From the sequence record MT799840.1: 64,000 bases of DNA. One strand, 5' to 3'. Shown piece by piece: positions 5,736-55,780 of the stretch. The notes under the pieces are model-generated. The model saw only the letters and a list, made by a program, of their open reading frames with translations. It was not told where the DNA came from and searched no databases. Made by a program: the position numbers and the translations under genes. How positions within the stretch are numbered: position 1 is the stretch's first letter; each line of letters starts with the position of its first letter.

Positions 5736-5811
5736 TTTCAGATATATATTACCTAGGTGATAGAAGACAATCTATCAACACAATCGACTATTAATCTAAA
5801 GGAGTATTGCC
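5736..5811 (+). promoter_or_regulatory. Early (virion-RNAP type) promoter cassette, copy 1
   Basis: TTTCAGATATATATTACCTAGGTGA + hairpin + AATCGACTATT + SD; TATATTAC is the phiKZ early consensus. Confidence 0.8.
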
Positions 5812-5955
5812 ATGTTAACTCGTAACCATAAACGTGCCATCTTTGCCATCGTTGCTGTTGTTGCTTTCGCGGTACTGTCTATCACTGTAACTCAAGATTA
5901 CAATAAGTGTATCGATAACGGTAACTCTGTTGCCATGTGTACAGGTCGCGGCTAA
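5812..5955 (+). CDS. Small membrane protein (47 aa, not in ORF track)
   Basis: Hand translation MLTRNHKRAIFAIVAVVAFAVLSITVTQDYNKCIDNGNSVAMCTGRG; SD AAAGGAG; stop overlaps next ATG (TAATG). Confidence 0.75.
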   Translation: MLTRNHKRAIFAIVAVVAFAVLSITVTQDYNKCIDNGNSVAMCTGRG

Positions 5956-12559: not shown

Positions 12560-12588
12560 TTATAGATAGATATTATCTTAGGGAGAGA
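12560..12588 (+). promoter_or_regulatory. Variant early-type promoter
   Basis: TTATAGATAGATATTATCTTAGGGAGAG. Confidence 0.6.
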
Positions 12589-24457: not shown

Positions 24458-25107
24458 TGCTGATTCCTGAGCCGAGGTTACCCGACAGTATGGTGAGGAT
24501 TGCGGCTGTTGACCCCGGTACTGCCCATCTTGGGATGGCGGTTATCGACTGGGAATTTGGCCAACCTCAAGGTGAAGTTGTCTGGGCGGGCACGGCTCAT
24601 GTTGCGGACCCTACGCACAATGGCTCTTTTGGTGAGTGCGTAGGGAAACGTGATGCGCGTTTGGTGGAATTAGAAGAACGCTTTCGCGAGTTTTTAAAAC
24701 TGGCAAGGCCGACTTTTGTCGCTACCGAAACTCCATTCATGCGAAGAGCTAAGCTCTCAGCGTACGAGTCTGGGGTGGAGTTGCAACTGATGTTGCGGCG
24801 AACGCTTTGGGACGTGTTTCCCGAAAAATATCTCCATGGGTTTAATCCTATTATTGTGAAGTCGTACGTTGGTGTGGAAGCAAAGGGTACAGATAAATCG
24901 CATATGCAACAAGCGGTGACAAAACTCTACGCGAACCATACCCGGTGCGACTTATCGGTATTGGATGAACACAGTATCGATGCCGTGGCGGTGGGTAATA
25001 TCTTCGTCAGGGTCAACTTATTAAACCTAAATAGTCTCCTTCCGCCCAAGGTTAAGGTTCCTAAAGCTAAGGCCGGTAAGCGGAAAGGAAGACGCCGGAG
25101 GAAATAG
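24457..25107 (+). CDS. ruvC: RuvC-like Holliday junction resolvase
   Basis: RIAAVDPGTAHLG, ATETPF and DEHSIDAVAVG carry the RuvC catalytic D/E/D pattern; basic C-tail. Confidence 0.85.
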   Translation: MLIPEPRLPDSMVRIAAVDPGTAHLGMAVIDWEFGQPQGEVVWAGTAHVADPTHNGSFGECVGKRDARLVELEERFREFLKLARPTFVATETPFMRRAKLSAYESGVELQLMLRRTLWDVFPEKYLHGFNPIIVKSYVGVEAKGTDKSHMQQAVTKLYANHTRCDLSVLDEHSIDAVAVGNIFVRVNLLNLNSLLPPKVKVPKAKAGKRKGRRRRK

Positions 25108-25109
25108 CG

Positions 25110-25682
25110 ATGTCGCAGTCTTTGCAAGAAGCTTCGACGGATGTGTTGGATGTTCTTATCCAGGCGGGCACCAACAAATTAAGCCTGGAAGAGAGCGCCC
25201 GACTAAAAAAAGCCGCCCAGACCGCCTTGGGAAGTGATGTTGAAATTGATGTCACTAAACCTGCTAACGTGATTCTTACTTCTTTACGCCCCCTCATCCT
25301 TGAGCAGGTGGGGAACATGGCGAAAACGTTCGAATCGCAAGCAAAAGCCGCTGTAGAAAGCATGGATGAAAAGCTCGCCAAAGAAACGTTATTGACCCTG
25401 TGGCCAAATTTGAAAGGTCCGCAGAAAGTCCTTATCGTTTTGTTGGTGCTGACCACTGTGGCGATTACTGGCGTGATGGCCTGGGACACACACCTGCATT
25501 ATCCACAAGAGTTAACGGATGTGCTGATTGTGGCGCTCTTACCATTGTTTGCTCAGGCCGTGTTCTTTACATGGCCGATTAAGACGCTTGCTTATAACTC
25601 GATGGCCATTGGTGCCAAAGTTGTTGAATACAAGCTGAATAAGAGCAACGCGAAGCAACAGACTACCGCACCTAAAGTGTAA
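25110..25682 (+). CDS. Membrane protein with two C-terminal transmembrane helices
   Basis: VLIVLLVLTTVAITGVMAW and VLIVALLPLFAQAVFFTW. Confidence 0.7.
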   Translation: MSQSLQEASTDVLDVLIQAGTNKLSLEESARLKKAAQTALGSDVEIDVTKPANVILTSLRPLILEQVGNMAKTFESQAKAAVESMDEKLAKETLLTLWPNLKGPQKVLIVLLVLTTVAITGVMAWDTHLHYPQELTDVLIVALLPLFAQAVFFTWPIKTLAYNSMAIGAKVVEYKLNKSNAKQQTTAPKV

Positions 25683-25685
25683 TTA

Positions 25686-25730
25686 AGCCCTCTTCTCCTC
25701 CGGGAGAAGAGGCTTCTTATTTTTTTTTAT
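25686..25730 (+). terminator. Intrinsic terminator
   Basis: CCTCTTCTCC-TCCG-GGAGAAGAGG + T-tract. Confidence 0.85.
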
Positions 25731-25752
25731 TACGTCTACGTAAATTACTGTG
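25730..25752 (+). promoter_or_regulatory. Bipartite promoter TTAC-N15-TGTG
   Basis: Directly after terminator, before ATG 25780. Confidence 0.6.
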
Positions 25753-25779
25753 TAAGCAAGACCCAAAAGGAATATAAAA

Positions 25780-26418
25780 ATGCAATTACAATTTCGTCAA
25801 CGGTCTGTACTACTACCGTTTAGCGCTATATTAGGCTCATTTACTAAAATGTTATCTGTGGATTTTACTGCTGCTGAGAAAGAAGCGTTGTTATTGTCGG
25901 CGGTTGAAGAAGTGTTGTGGGAAGCGTTTTACGTCGTGCCGTTTCGTAGCTGTTTGAACGCGCCGTATGTCGAGGGGCAATTTGTTAGTGCTCTTTCTAC
26001 TGCGATTACCAAACGTAAACTAAATGCCATGGCACACGTCAAAGAGATCACCGCGCAACGAGGACGGATATTCGCTACCATCAGAAATGTGTTAATTAAA
26101 GAAGGGTTTCTCACAGATGCGCTAGGTCCCGAGGTTCCTTGGGAGCCTGGTCATCCGCCGCGTCAGTTCGACCACGGGTACAAGTTAAGTATAATTATGC
26201 CACGCGGTAAGCGTGACGTCTCATTGGGGAAATGGTTACAGGTAAGTTGGGTTCGTCCTACTATCGATTGGCAAGAAATGTCGGTCAATCGCTATCTGGA
26301 ACACCTGGCAAAAACACCGGCACAGTTTCACCGTTCAACAATCCTGCCGCTGCACATGCTGTTAAAACCGTCCCTGTCATTGGCAGAAGCCAGATACCTG
26401 CTTAGTGGAGAGAAGTGA
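25780..26418 (+). CDS. Hypothetical protein
   Basis: 212 aa, SD AAGGA, preceded by bipartite promoter. Confidence 0.65.
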   Translation: MQLQFRQRSVLLPFSAILGSFTKMLSVDFTAAEKEALLLSAVEEVLWEAFYVVPFRSCLNAPYVEGQFVSALSTAITKRKLNAMAHVKEITAQRGRIFATIRNVLIKEGFLTDALGPEVPWEPGHPPRQFDHGYKLSIIMPRGKRDVSLGKWLQVSWVRPTIDWQEMSVNRYLEHLAKTPAQFHRSTILPLHMLLKPSLSLAEARYLLSGEK

Positions 26419-34116: not shown

Positions 34117-34740
34117 ATGTTAAACTCAGTGGCGCTGGATGGTCCGGACTTTTCTAGCAAATCAACACTCGCGAAAATGATTCAAGCGATGTTGCGCTCC
34201 GCTGGCGTTAATGTCATCATCGTCAATCACCCGACGAATACCACTGAAGCCGGTATTAGTGCACGTTCTCTGGTTATCCAGCACGCTTCTAACGAACGCA
34301 TTGCTAAAGCGATGTGTCTGGATTTCCAATACACGATGGATTTCGTTGTACCAGAGCACGATGTCGTTATTTTTGACCGTTTTTGTCAATCGACCATTGT
34401 CTACCAAGGCGTCGATGGTAAAGGGGAAGTTTTCCGTTCACGGGTATTAGACCACATTAACGCACCGAAACTTTACGTGGCAACCGATGTATCCTACGAA
34501 ACCGCCACAGAACGCTTTAAGAAGCGCGCAGAGGCCCAGGGCAAGAACTGGGATGATGAGGTACTGACAGCGAAGTATCTGCGCTCACAGACTGATTGGG
34601 ACGCGTTACGCGACCACTACCGTTTTGCTTTCCACATCACCACAGATGGCGGCGATAAGTTCCCGCTGATGCGTGTTACGGCTGACGACGATATAGCGTT
34701 ACAAGCCGCGCGTATCGTTGAACGTATTCTGGCAGGTTAG
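34117..34740 (+). CDS. tmk: Thymidylate (dTMP) kinase
   Basis: VALDGPDFSSKST P-loop, NHP (usual REP), FDRFCQSTIVYQG motif. Confidence 0.85.
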   Translation: MLNSVALDGPDFSSKSTLAKMIQAMLRSAGVNVIIVNHPTNTTEAGISARSLVIQHASNERIAKAMCLDFQYTMDFVVPEHDVVIFDRFCQSTIVYQGVDGKGEVFRSRVLDHINAPKLYVATDVSYETATERFKKRAEAQGKNWDDEVLTAKYLRSQTDWDALRDHYRFAFHITTDGGDKFPLMRVTADDDIALQAARIVERILAG

Positions 34741-34742
34741 TT

Positions 34743-34783
34743 GTACCCCTCTTACCTTCGGGTAAGAGGGTATTGTCTTTTTT
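34743..34783 (+). terminator. Intrinsic terminator (identical core to 7667)
   Basis: 28-nt exact match to 7667-7694. Confidence 0.85.
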
Positions 34784-34804
34784 ACAGATCAGAACAGTCT
34801 TATG
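34782..34804 (+). promoter_or_regulatory. Bipartite promoter TTAC-N15-TATG
   Basis: Upstream of early cassette and HTH gene. Confidence 0.6.
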
Positions 34805-34827
34805 CTTTTTGCTTCCACTCCACTAAA

Positions 34828-34903
34828 TTTCAGATATATATTACTTAGGTGAGAGTTACTACTAAACTCTCTAATCGACTATTAATCTAAAAGGAGTATT
34901 CTA
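34828..34903 (+). promoter_or_regulatory. Early promoter cassette, copy 2
   Basis: TTTCAGATATATATTACTTAGGTGA + hairpin + AATCGACTATT + SD. Confidence 0.8.
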
Positions 34904-35269
34904 ATGCGTTTTAAACATCAAACCGTTGTGTTGGCAAAGAAAGCGTTTTTGGTTCGTCTTTCTTACATTATTACTCGTGTCACTGCGAAGGACGTTACGC
35001 AGAAAGACATTGCGTTATTAGTAGGCTGCTCACCGTCACAAATATCTGCGATTAAAAATGAACGTGAGAAGGCCGTGACTATCGAAACATTGATGCGGGT
35101 TGCTGATACACTGCGCCTGAATTACGAAATCGTCTACCGTTCTATCAACGGTAAATGTCGTCATAGCTTTAAAATTGAATCATGCATCGATTACATGAAC
35201 AACTGTCCTATCCGGGTACGAGAAACAGGACTTAAAGTCATGGCACGTAAACCTTCTGCAGTAATGTAG
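34904..35269 (+). CDS. XRE/Cro-C1 helix-turn-helix protein
   Basis: VTQKDIALLVGCSPSQISAIKNE...VTIETLMRVADTL is a canonical HTH_3 pattern. Confidence 0.85.
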   Translation: MRFKHQTVVLAKKAFLVRLSYIITRVTAKDVTQKDIALLVGCSPSQISAIKNEREKAVTIETLMRVADTLRLNYEIVYRSINGKCRHSFKIESCIDYMNNCPIRVRETGLKVMARKPSAVM

Positions 35270-35280
35270 GGAGCAAACGT

Positions 35281-35667
35281 ATGAATTGGTTTGTAAATGG
35301 TATCACCCGTCGCGTGATGACGGAAGAGGATGATCGATGTAAACATCTTAAAGTGGGCTCTATAGCCCCGCGCTATACGGCAGAGTGCGACCCATGGGGC
35401 CGCGAAACGTATTACATGTGCGAAGACTGCTGGGAAAAACTGCAGGCTGAAATTGCAGCTGAAGAAGTGGTCTGCGACGATTGCAAAGGTACCTTCCCGA
35501 AACGGGATACTGTTGAGTGGAAATGGCACGACTTTGACCCCAGTCAAGGGGATAAAGAACTTTGTATCTGTAATAACTGCGTGTCTTTACCGACACATTT
35601 AAACCGTGTAGAGAATGACCGTCGGGCATTTGAACACGACTTTCCAGAAGCAGCTTTCTGGGATTAA
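35281..35667 (+). CDS. Cys-rich putative zinc-binding protein
   Basis: CEDC, CDDC, CICNNC motifs. Confidence 0.7.
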   Translation: MNWFVNGITRRVMTEEDDRCKHLKVGSIAPRYTAECDPWGRETYYMCEDCWEKLQAEIAAEEVVCDDCKGTFPKRDTVEWKWHDFDPSQGDKELCICNNCVSLPTHLNRVENDRRAFEHDFPEAAFWD

Positions 35668-54838: not shown

Positions 54839-54876
54839 TACCCTACTCCTTCGGGAGTAGGGTTTCTTCTTTTTTT
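54839..54876 (+). terminator. Intrinsic terminator
   Basis: ACCCTACTCC-TTCG-GGAGTAGGGT + T-tract. Confidence 0.9.
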
Positions 54877-54897: not shown

Positions 54898-54974
54898 TTT
54901 CAGATATATATTACTTAGGTGAGAGTTAACCATTAACTCTTATCTAATCGACCATTATCTTAAGGAGTTTTAAC
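54898..54974 (+). promoter_or_regulatory. Early promoter cassette, copy 3
   Basis: TTTCAGATATATATTACTTAGGTGA + hairpin + AATCGACCATT + SD. Confidence 0.8.
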
Positions 54975-55421
54975 ATGTACATTCTGAATAACGAACTTAC
55001 TAAGTACGCTAGCAAAAACCCGATTATGATTTCTTTCCTAATCGTGATGGCGGCCAACAAACAAGACCCTAGCGAATTCACTACTGAGGACTTCGAAGAG
55101 ATTATCGCCAACGCCAAAGAAGCCACGTTCCAGACCACAGAACCTACTCGCGACGAGTTCCCCCTAGGTGAAACCGGCGATGTATTGTTTAACGACATGG
55201 TTGCTTCGTACTACATCAATAGACGTGGTATGGAAATCGAATACGACGAACTTCCTACTAGCAGCTTTGCTGAAATGATTCGTGATTATCGTCGTCAAGT
55301 TGTCTCTGACGATATCGTAAAAAAATACATGGCACAAATCAGCCCATTCAGTCTTGAATTCGAAAACCGCGCGATTGCCTTAGCAACACATCGCCTGCGT
55401 TTAGAAAAAGAAGTACACTAA
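54975..55421 (+). CDS. Hypothetical early protein
   Basis: First gene behind early cassette, SD TAAGGAG. Confidence 0.7.
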   Translation: MYILNNELTKYASKNPIMISFLIVMAANKQDPSEFTTEDFEEIIANAKEATFQTTEPTRDEFPLGETGDVLFNDMVASYYINRRGMEIEYDELPTSSFAEMIRDYRRQVVSDDIVKKYMAQISPFSLEFENRAIALATHRLRLEKEVH

Positions 55422-55482: not shown

Positions 55483-55701
55483 ATGCGCAACCTGTTCTCC
55501 AAATCTGAAATCAAACCTGTTGTTGAAACCGCAGCCAAACGTAAGCCCGACATGATTGACCTGCTGCTGAAAATGTCTGCAGTAGAAGCCAAAGCTTTCA
55601 TGAATACAATGAAAGACGACGAGAAAACGATTGACAACGTTGAAGTAACCTACGGTGTTAAAGACCGCCCAAAGAATAACGGCCTTGTGTGGGTCTGTTA
55701 A
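55483..55701 (+). CDS. Small hypothetical protein
   Basis: SD AAGGA, 72 aa. Confidence 0.6.
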   Translation: MRNLFSKSEIKPVVETAAKRKPDMIDLLLKMSAVEAKAFMNTMKDDEKTIDNVEVTYGVKDRPKNNGLVWVC

Positions 55702-55725
55702 TCGACGATTGAGGATATAGTCGTG

Positions 55726-55780
55726 AAGAAAAGGGAGCTTCGGCTCCCCTTCTTTTTTTTGTTTCCTTTTCTTTTTTTGT
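55726..55780 (+). terminator. Intrinsic terminator
   Basis: GGGAGC-TTCG-GCTCCC + long T-tract. Confidence 0.85.

Follow-up and report, generated by a model that had tools for sequence, protein, structure and literature searches.

A short asymmetric box at a fixed distance from the start codons of early genes in SPN3US-like jumbo phages

What does a short sequence that recurs ahead of early genes in a jumbo phage do, and is it the operator of the helix-turn-helix (HTH) protein encoded behind one of its copies? The question is raised by a stretch of 64,000 nucleotides (nt) from Salmonella phage JN03 (bases 62001-126000 of MT799840.1; genus Seoulvirus, SPN3US-like jumbo phage), referred to here as the window, and positions are those of the window unless JN03 is named; a 2.4-kb region that surrounds the HTH-gene cassette matches JN03 with 100% identity. 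The sequence in question, which we call the box, occurs there exactly as AATCGACNATT at 5782, 34388, 34873, 54946, and 55700, always on the + strand, where 0.22 copies are expected and none of 100 shuffles reached five. A sequence-only reading had located these five sites correctly and had interpreted them as a quasi-palindromic operator, through which an XRE-type HTH protein (encoded at 34904-35269) would shut off early operons including its own, possibly with looping from 34873 to the copy inside tmk at 34388. It had also placed three of the copies between promoter and ribosome-binding site; indeed, the window contains three near-identical cassettes, in each of which the box lies between a conserved promoter-like 22-mer and a Shine-Dalgarno sequence (SD). 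We compared the complete genomes of JN03 and Erwinia phage Asesino (Erskinevirus) and the HTH-gene region of seven further relatives. On this comparative evidence, the box is real, under selection, and clade-specific, and it marks a stable set of genes.

The enrichment extends over the whole JN03 genome, which holds 12 copies of AATCGACNATT on the + strand and none on the - strand, against approximately 0.23 per strand in simulations, and all 12 are oriented in the gene sense. The observation is stronger than the sequence-only reading held, being both genome-wide and cross-genus. Among the most over-represented 10-mers, AATCGACTAT ranks beside T-runs, SD context, and the promoter motif. An 8-nt core is found 20 times on the + strand and five times on the - strand of JN03 (∼7.6 expected per strand), and 19 and five times, respectively, in Asesino; the + strand excess is located wholly at start regions, which hold 11-13 of these copies in the two phages, and the - strand count is close to background.

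To describe the element, we aligned on the core 24 start-region copies from five phages (10 from JN03, 11 from Asesino, and the HTH-gene leaders of SPAsTU, SNUABM_29, and phiEaH2). The resulting consensus, a[a/t]TCGACYATTA, is 10-12 nt long and asymmetric, with TCGACYATTA as its core. Each position of T-C-G-A-C is 96% conserved; the next base is T (15 copies), C (8), or A (1), and never G; and the following A, T, T, and A are conserved to 96%, 100%, 88%, and 75%, respectively. The two bases that flank the core on its left are A in 88% and 62% of the copies, with AT, TT, AC, or TA in orthologs. The symmetry that a palindromic operator would conserve is not kept in this alignment: (i) the base that would complete the palindrome as partner of C4 is T, C, or A, with G in none of the 24 copies; (ii) the positions without a symmetric partner (C, Y, and the final A) are conserved, the non-symmetric positions reaching 75-100%; (iii) the left arm varies (AA, AT, TT, AC, or TA); and (iv) no second half-site lies ∼10 base pairs (bp) away in the flanks of the aligned copies. 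Because the palindrome-completing base is unused and the unpaired positions are conserved, dyad symmetry is not the selected property, and the quasi-palindromic operator does not survive the comparison. In the RNA leaders the box is predicted to be single-stranded, with a probability of being unpaired of 0.61-0.94 (0.78 in cassette 2).

The position of the box is set by the start codon. In 22 of the 24 copies the distance from core to start codon is 25-30 nt, typically ∼27 bases, with 3-8 nt between the end of the box and the SD downstream of it; the other two copies belong to a single orthologous gene pair, in which the box lies 18 nt from the start and the SD is weak. The probability that at least nine of 12 random positions would fall inside such a range is ∼1e-18, and 11 of the 12 exact JN03 copies are start-linked, past or present. 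Distances to promoter-like sites are 2-3 nt, about 25 nt, or about 60 nt, and elsewhere no promoter is nearby. Four JN03 loci carry the box behind a class-B promoter and a hairpin (both described below); a gp68-like gene has it a few bases past a class-A promoter 15-mer, with the hairpin absent; at JN03 58923 and 224575 it lies within an operon, adjoining or overlapping the upstream stop codon; at JN03 166996 and 186167 it follows immediately on a terminator T-run; two JN03 loci have it after a leader of promoter, hairpin, and terminator; and at two genes, in both JN03 and Asesino, the order is terminator, box, and SD, with no other recognisable promoter. In SPAsTU, an extra open reading frame (ORF) between tmk and the HTH gene separates the promoter from the box, which remains at the SD of the HTH gene and there overlaps the stop codon of the inserted ORF. 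A palindromic operator would be expected to hold a fixed position relative to the promoter that it regulates; the spacing is constant to the start codon only, and from these arrangements we conclude that the box follows the ribosome-binding site or start codon, not the promoter.

Nine to 10 of the JN03 start-region copies are present at orthologous Asesino genes, the proteins of which are 36-91% identical, and the box was kept while the adjoining leader sequence and the hairpin loops diverged. At the HTH gene, JN03 and Asesino hardly differ from the box to the SD context, with a protein identity of just 58%, and the box is kept there also in SPAsTU, SNUABM_29, and phiEaH2. A blastn search with the start region of this gene gave matches in Seoulvirus and Erskinevirus only. 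Upstream of the HTH gene, a full box is absent in Machina, Miami, and ZPAH34, and what Caitlin retains of it is truncated (ATTCGATTATC); in Caitlin, Machina, Wellington, and CR5, the region upstream of the gp68-like gene has the promoter but no box. An IMG/VR pattern scan for box plus SD returned mostly chance matches, and the jumbo-sized contigs among the matches listed were only SPN3US (240,413 bp) and one contig of 246,337 bp. Of the early-gene regulon proposed from sequence only, one part stands, namely a shared, selected cis-element at a small early set that includes the HTH gene and recurs at the same families in another genus; the dyad operator does not. No Rfam covariance model matched the window at gathering thresholds, and none matched within 34700-34960 with an E-value of up to 1. 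A site for IHF was considered as well and rejected, its consensus being unmet by eye and its WATC part not kept in Asesino.

In the jumbo phages of Seoulvirus and Erskinevirus, the box precedes some dozen early genes that are non-structural, among them the HTH gene, and none of the downstream genes is annotated as structural. Their products have no Pfam match and every PHROG assigned to them is 'unknown', with one exception: the 'hypothetical protein' of JN03 24594-26228 is homologous to PHIKZ068, which in phiKZ forms the fifth subunit of the non-virion RNA polymerase (nvRNAP; PDB 7ogp_B, E 2.5e-6). The leader of this gene, from the promoter through the box to the SD, is nearly identical in JN03 and Asesino. 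The box is found also at start regions that are not cassettes, such as those of the gp68-like and HD-domain genes. For the gene annotated at JN03 59049, the probable start is GTG 58953, which a box and SD precede. Three conserved ORFs are missing from the JN03 annotation: a 47-amino-acid (aa) ORF (5812-5955, phrog_8574), a 72-aa ORF (55483-55701) homologous to Asesino gp153, and a 307-aa ORF (JN03 186196-187119, phrog_6160).

Two of the five copies in the window lie outside the cassettes, and neither shows the conservation expected of an auxiliary operator site. The copy in tmk spells the codons for Q-S-T-I, which read P-S-T-V (CCA TCC ACT GTT) in SPAsTU and have a changed first codon in SNUABM_29; the Asesino tmk has no such site with up to one mismatch, and the copy is not retained in phiEaH2. 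From this comparison, the 34388 copy is a coding coincidence outside the box system, and, since it is an unconserved coding string, looping to it is without basis. The copy at 55700, a perfect palindrome that had been read as a further operator, is the sole one with G at the variable position, and it overlaps the TAA stop of an unannotated gp153-like ORF (55483-55701). In SPN3US and most other Seoulviruses, the same box, GAGGA SD, and GTG start a 143-aa gene (ACQ60_gp129). JN03 is without ∼427 bp at this place, and a 9-bp direct repeat, AGTCGTGAA, stands at both ends of the segment in SPN3US; the JN03 deletion between the two AGTCGTGAA copies fuses the start region to the operon terminator. 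ACQ60_gp129 is also missing in EC001, Lh1B, SEGD1, SaP7, and Proteus phage 7, as judged from single-piece matches. The palindrome is, on this alignment, an orphaned start region whose gene JN03 has lost, and, having once been start-linked, it strengthens the association with start codons.

How, then, might the box act? The reading that we favor, with a probability of about 40%, is that the box, as a start-associated element, works on the mRNA when translation is initiated. This reading draws on the gene-sense orientation, the fixed start-codon spacing, the variable relation to promoters, the orphaned start region at 55700, the predicted unpaired state of the box just 3' of hairpins with compensatory changes, its asymmetric conservation, and its retention at orthologous genes. 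The box would lie in a single-stranded 5' leader, a few bases upstream of the SD and within the region covered by the initiating ribosome, and would serve either as an enhancer or standby element or as the site at which a trans-acting factor binds to tune or time translation, in the manner of T4 RegA. The sequences show the anatomy, the strand specificity, the spacing to the start codon, the predicted single-strandedness, and the conservation between genera; that the box works through RNA, and in which direction, we infer from them. Several points weigh against this reading. The energy of a duplex between the box and 16S rRNA (E. coli rrsH) falls within the range of shuffles (fraction at least as good, 0.30-0.82), and a search for a complementary RNA partner in the phage yielded none on the JN03 sense strand and one non-conserved match in Asesino. 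Further, the exceptional gene pair has its box at 18 nt with a weak SD; the copies directly after terminators are to be expected just as much if the box is a promoter; box and HTH recognition helix share their distribution among the phages; the box has no known RNA-binding partner; and sequence alone does not separate a sense-oriented DNA site from an RNA site. An enhancer that pairs with rRNA was rejected on the chance-level 16S complementarity. Because neither this complementarity nor a phage partner was found, the invariant UCGAC is not explained by generic ribosome contacts, and a site for a trans-acting factor is the most likely form of a translational element.

A protein that binds the box as double-stranded DNA is the alternative that survives best, and we regard it as unlikely but deserving of serious weight. 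The XRE-HTH protein, or another phage protein, would bind an asymmetric operator in one orientation and block initiation or elongation by the phage RNA polymerase (RNAP), a model that keeps the regulon idea and drops the dyad and the looping. The HTH gene bears one of the best conserved copies of the box, and its product, which the sequence-only reading had recognised as an XRE protein, matches Pfam HTH_3 (PF01381) with an E-value of 2e-7 (31.4 bits, cut-off 23), as well as HTH_26, also with a score above the cut-off, and HTH_37, for which score and cut-off are equal (27 versus 27). An AlphaFold2 model, built from a seven-row alignment, places helices at residues 5-28, 33-40, 44-51, and 60-69, with pLDDT 77-90 over residues 11-70 and a poor C-terminal part of 50 residues; its best Foldseek matches were XRE regulators (2o38), the antitoxin HigA2, the R-M controller protein C.Esp1396I, and HipB, with probabilities of 0.98-1.0 and E-values of 0.04 or weaker. 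As modeled, this is clearly a genuine XRE-type domain and a credible DNA-binding domain. The family is confined to this jumbo phage group (83 phage records in tblastn; 13 in 5.8 billion proteins), and IMG/VR and metagenome scans for further relatives returned SPN3US-, Asesino-, and phiEaH2-like contigs and one unrelated XRE gene only; PADLOC gave generic HTH matches only.

The best argument for a link between the HTH protein and the box comes from residues 41-55 (GCSxSQISA[IV]KNERE), which include the recognition helix: 13 of these 15 residues are invariant in the five box-bearing phages, compared with 4-8 of 15 identical in the four phages without a full box (Machina, Caitlin, Miami, and ZPAH34). 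This bears out in part the co-occurrence of motif and HTH gene that an operator model predicts, in that the helix is near-invariant where the box is found, whereas those four phages keep the HTH gene without the full box. The co-distribution follows one clade and therefore amounts to a single evolutionary event (n = 1), and the IMG/VR and metagenome scans supplied no additional lineages that would separate helix and clade. Moreover, the fold neighbours of the protein are dimers whose targets are inverted repeats, the two half-sites being spaced by about one turn of the helix, a geometry that neither an 11-bp dyad nor a lone asymmetric 10-mer fits, and the second half-site ∼10 bp away that such dimers would need is absent. 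At the gp68-like gene, the box does occupy a classical operator position, a few bases past the class-A 15-mer, and the stoperators of phage L5 are likewise orientation-biased and intergenic, as they are cited in PMC3203893. However, it is the start codon, not a promoter, to which the box keeps a fixed distance, and around several copies there is no promoter. Furthermore, the box is present at only ∼9 of ∼23 promoter-like sites and so cannot provide a general early shut-off. A second bipartite promoter that had been assigned to the HTH gene was not found in a sigma-70-type scan of 34300-35400, and the same scan led us to reject a sigma-70 promoter in or around the box. Directly downstream of the HTH gene lies a 128-aa gene (35281-35667; phrog_8344), which has a weak double-zinc-ribbon match (E 0.017), and, compared by position, a small ORF likewise comes next in SPAsTU, phiEaH2, Asesino, Machina, Caitlin, and ZPAH34; the HTH gene and the 128-aa gene may form a functional pair.

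Also unlikely, in our judgment, is that the box is itself a promoter element, the -10-like core of a second promoter class used by the nvRNAP in middle transcription. Initiation would then occur a few bases downstream and yield leaders of 15-20 nt, and the box genes would be expressed both early and in the middle phase. This would account for the two genes of both genomes that show only terminator, box, and SD, for the two loci with promoter, hairpin, terminator, and box, and for SPAsTU, where the box would serve as the HTH gene's own promoter. Further, there is a resemblance between the TATTA part and the promoter core ATATTA[TC], the nvRNAP promoters known so far are short (PMC7598289), and ∼12 sites per genome is within the range of the mapped middle promoters of 201phi2-1 (PMC11512511). 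On the other hand, at the gp68-like gene the box would nearly overlap the class-A start site; no conserved initiating base lies at a fixed distance besides the SD itself; the alignment of box and promoter consensus takes two gaps; and in related genera these start regions carry no comparable motif. In the searchable literature, we found no transcriptome or promoter study of SPN3US-like phages.

A broader proposal, which we hold to be quite improbable, is that a dedicated phage regulon has the box as its cis-element. A phage-encoded factor, perhaps the XRE-HTH protein, itself the product of a box-bearing message, would recognise the box, either as DNA or in the mRNA, and co-ordinately time ∼12 early genes, including the PHIKZ068 homolog, thereby helping to set the early-to-middle switch in nucleus-forming jumbo phages. 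That the box has no function of its own and is carried along in cassettes that spread by duplication and recombination would suit the clearly paralogous class-B cassettes and the gene gains and losses at cassette edges; yet the core is kept at 9-10 orthologous sites across genera where the neighbouring leader, the loops, and the proteins (36-60% identity) have diverged, and it also occurs at start regions that are not cassette copies, and this orthologous conservation makes pure hitch-hiking very unlikely. The original model of a quasi-palindromic dimer operator that loops from 34873 to tmk is hardly tenable, for although the JN03 consensus is symmetric at four of five paired positions (chance 0.016) and one copy is a perfect palindrome, the symmetry is not a conserved feature, the tmk and palindromic copies are a coding coincidence and an orphan start region, respectively, and the half-site centres of an 11-bp dyad are ∼6 bp apart, too close for a canonical HTH dimer.

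Among the known systems, the Start-Associated Sequences (SAS and ESAS) of Cluster K mycobacteriophages (PMC3203893) are by analogy closest in kind to the box, which is not a member of that family. Both are short asymmetric repeats, of which a genome has around 12 copies that almost all point the same way and keep a short, fixed distance to the start codons of a subset of non-structural genes; both recur at the same gene families in related phages (across subgroups in the case of SAS), overlap an upstream stop codon at times, and lack a known binding partner. The 13-bp SAS contains the AGGAG of the ribosome-binding site and lies 3-7 bp from the start (PMC3203893), whereas the box lies upstream of the SD, at 25-30 nt, and does not include it. 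In addition, the inverted repeats of ESAS were judged not to be RNA hairpins (PMC3203893), in contrast to the JN03-type hairpins, which show compensatory changes. The sequences are unrelated, and the phage lineages differ.

Stoperators are bound by an HTH repressor that stops transcription, silence the prophage, and keep no fixed distance to start codons. Those of L5 and Cluster A phages, as cited in PMC3203893, share with the box asymmetry, multiple copies, orientation specificity, and location in short intergenic spaces. In contrast, the JN03 phage is lytic, the spacing of the box to the start is tight, and binding of the HTH protein to the box is a candidate interaction only. The cassettes resemble the promoter-early stem-loop (PeSL) cassettes of T4-type phages in repeating an early promoter and stem-loop, in flanking small accessory genes, and in having indels at their boundaries; PeSL promoters are sigma-70-like and the stem-loop is a terminator (PMC2839356, PMC4122927), whereas the JN03 cassette has a phage-RNAP-type promoter, a 5' hairpin, and the box in addition. 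The JN03 deletion, moreover, used a 9-bp repeat and not the cassettes. T4 RegA operators and the T7 gene 10 'epsilon' enhancer are cis-elements that set translation from within the ribosome-binding region, in a subset of phage mRNAs that are early or highly expressed. Neither has sequence similarity to the box, epsilon-type 16S complementarity was tested and not found, and no RegA-like protein was identified. Lastly, the early promoters of phiKZ-like phages (PMC7598289, PMC11512511, PMC10914365) are like the 22-mer in AT-richness, high conservation, and genome distribution, a likeness that concerns the promoter and not the box. The searchable literature on transcription in SPN3US and phiKZ-like phages gave us no account of the box, nor of any other conserved element in the leaders behind such promoters.

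The cassette that carries the box is a module of ∼90 nt, which runs from an upstream terminator and an early-type promoter through a 5'-terminal hairpin and the box to a strong SD (AAGGAG) with its start codon; the features of the window are collected in Table 1. An intrinsic terminator ends the preceding operon at cassettes 2 and 3, and the stem of the one behind tmk is kept in Asesino, phiEaH2, SNUABM_29, and Machina. The class-B promoter-like 22-mer, CAGATATATATTACYTAGGTGA, has six exact or near-exact copies genome-wide, all on the + strand, and is a sub-class of a larger class-A family (ttcAGATAGATATTATCTnagtGA); together they make up ∼23 JN03 sites, all on the + strand and upstream of genes. 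The motif is found in six genera, is conserved from Seoulvirus to Derbicusvirus and an Aeromonas phage, and lies upstream of orthologous genes also in Machinavirus and Wellingtonvirus as well as in these two. Upstream of the HTH gene, the promoter is conserved in Asesino and phiEaH2, with a class-A form in SNUABM_29, Machina, and ZPAH34. Early promoters of phiKZ-like phages have an AT-rich element of ∼10 nt that lies ∼10 bp upstream of the early transcription start site (PMC7598289, PMC11512511). The 22-mers, as conserved AT-rich repeats upstream of early operons and all in gene orientation, are by this analogy very probably virion-RNAP early promoters, with a putative start site.

The 5' hairpin has 6-11 bp, begins within the first five bases from the putative start site, and is present in all 11 class-B cassettes of JN03 and Asesino (z = -2.6 to -5.7). 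These cassettes are paralogous, with promoter, stem arm, box, and SD context in common; stems vary in sequence between cassettes and retain their pairing, including G-U pairs. In cassette 2, Asesino and phiEaH2 keep the stem with a diverged loop, and SNUABM_29 and Machina have a different, compensated stem. Such compensatory and G-U changes imply that the leader is selected as RNA, and the hairpin is most simply read as an RNA-level feature, a 5'-terminal stabilising stem-loop.

Table 1. Features of the three cassettes and of the two further box copies in the window (window positions; core, conserved part of the box).
Feature	Position	Strand	Evidence or remark
Cassette 1, class-B early-type promoter 22-mer CAGATATATATTACYTAGGTGA	5739-5760	+	predicted; analogy with phiKZ-like promoters
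Cassette 1, 5'-terminal RNA hairpin, GAUAGA / UCUAUC	5758-5777	+	z = -4.2
Cassette 1, box AATCGACTATTA, core 5784-5793	5782-5793	+	Asesino ortholog keeps ACTCGACCATTA
Cassette 1, 47-aa ORF, SD AAGGAG 5799-5804	5812-5955	+	phrog_8574, E 1.7e-28; unannotated in JN03
Box copy inside tmk	34388-34398	+	codons CAA TCG ACC ATT (Q-S-T-I) within tmk segment DRFCQSTIVYQG
Intrinsic terminator of tmk operon	34747-34785	+	10-bp stem and T-run
Cassette 2, class-B early-type promoter	34831-34852	+	predicted, motif match
Cassette 2, 5'-terminal RNA hairpin, GAGAGUU / AACUCUC	34851-34871	+	z = -2.7
Cassette 2, box AATCGACTATTA, core 34875-34884	34873-34884	+	motif match; predicted single-stranded
XRE-type HTH gene, 121 aa, SD AAGGAG 34891-34896	34904-35269	+	Pfam HTH_3/HTH_37/HTH_26; phrog_7126
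Terminator before cassette 3	54840-54876	+	GC-rich stem, TTCG loop, T-run; read from sequence
Cassette 3, class-B early-type promoter	54901-54922	+	predicted, motif match
Cassette 3, 5'-terminal RNA hairpin	54919-54943	+	z = -5.7
Cassette 3, box AATCGACCATTA	54946-54957	+	Asesino ortholog upstream of gp152 keeps AATCGACCATT
Cassette 3, 148-aa gene, SD 54962-54967	54975-55421	+	annotated, JN03 116975-117421; phrog_8484
Orphaned start region	55699-55727	+	box AATCGACGATT (55700-55710), GAGGA, GTG at 55723, repeat AGTCGTGAA (55719-55727)

Five class-A promoter-like sites in the window are without a box (AGATAGATATTATCT, 0-2 mismatches), at 12564, 12821, 33132, 41409, and 49808 (JN03 74564, 74821, 95132, 103409, and 111808). 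The leaders at JN03 165089-165187 and 166905-167026 are ordered promoter, 5' hairpin, strong intrinsic terminator (hairpin and T-run), box, and gene, and, from this order, they look like attenuators or sources of ∼60-nt leader RNAs. An extra small ORF between tmk and the HTH gene is present in SPAsTU (1021-1473 of the compared region) and in Caitlin (1144-1446 of the compared region), and EC001 and Lh1B have ∼270 extra bp in the same 2.4-kb region; the cassette boundary at the HTH gene looks like an insertion hot spot in these alignments. Several LR5359xx records of SPFM phages align to the window solely in dozens of short pieces with 96-99% identity, a fragmentation that suggests error-rich assemblies, not real divergence.

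Gene regulation in phiKZ-like jumbo phages is known mainly in terms of promoter classes for two phage RNA polymerases. A selected element linked to the start codons of ∼12 early genes offers a concrete and cheap experimental handle on the tuning of early genes, and the genes that carry it include the homolog of an nvRNAP subunit as well as the only obvious transcription-factor-like gene of the region. The comparison also corrects the operator model, since two of its five 'operators' are a coding coincidence and a deletion scar. Finally, the cassette represents a defined modular expression unit for the engineering of SPN3US-type phages.

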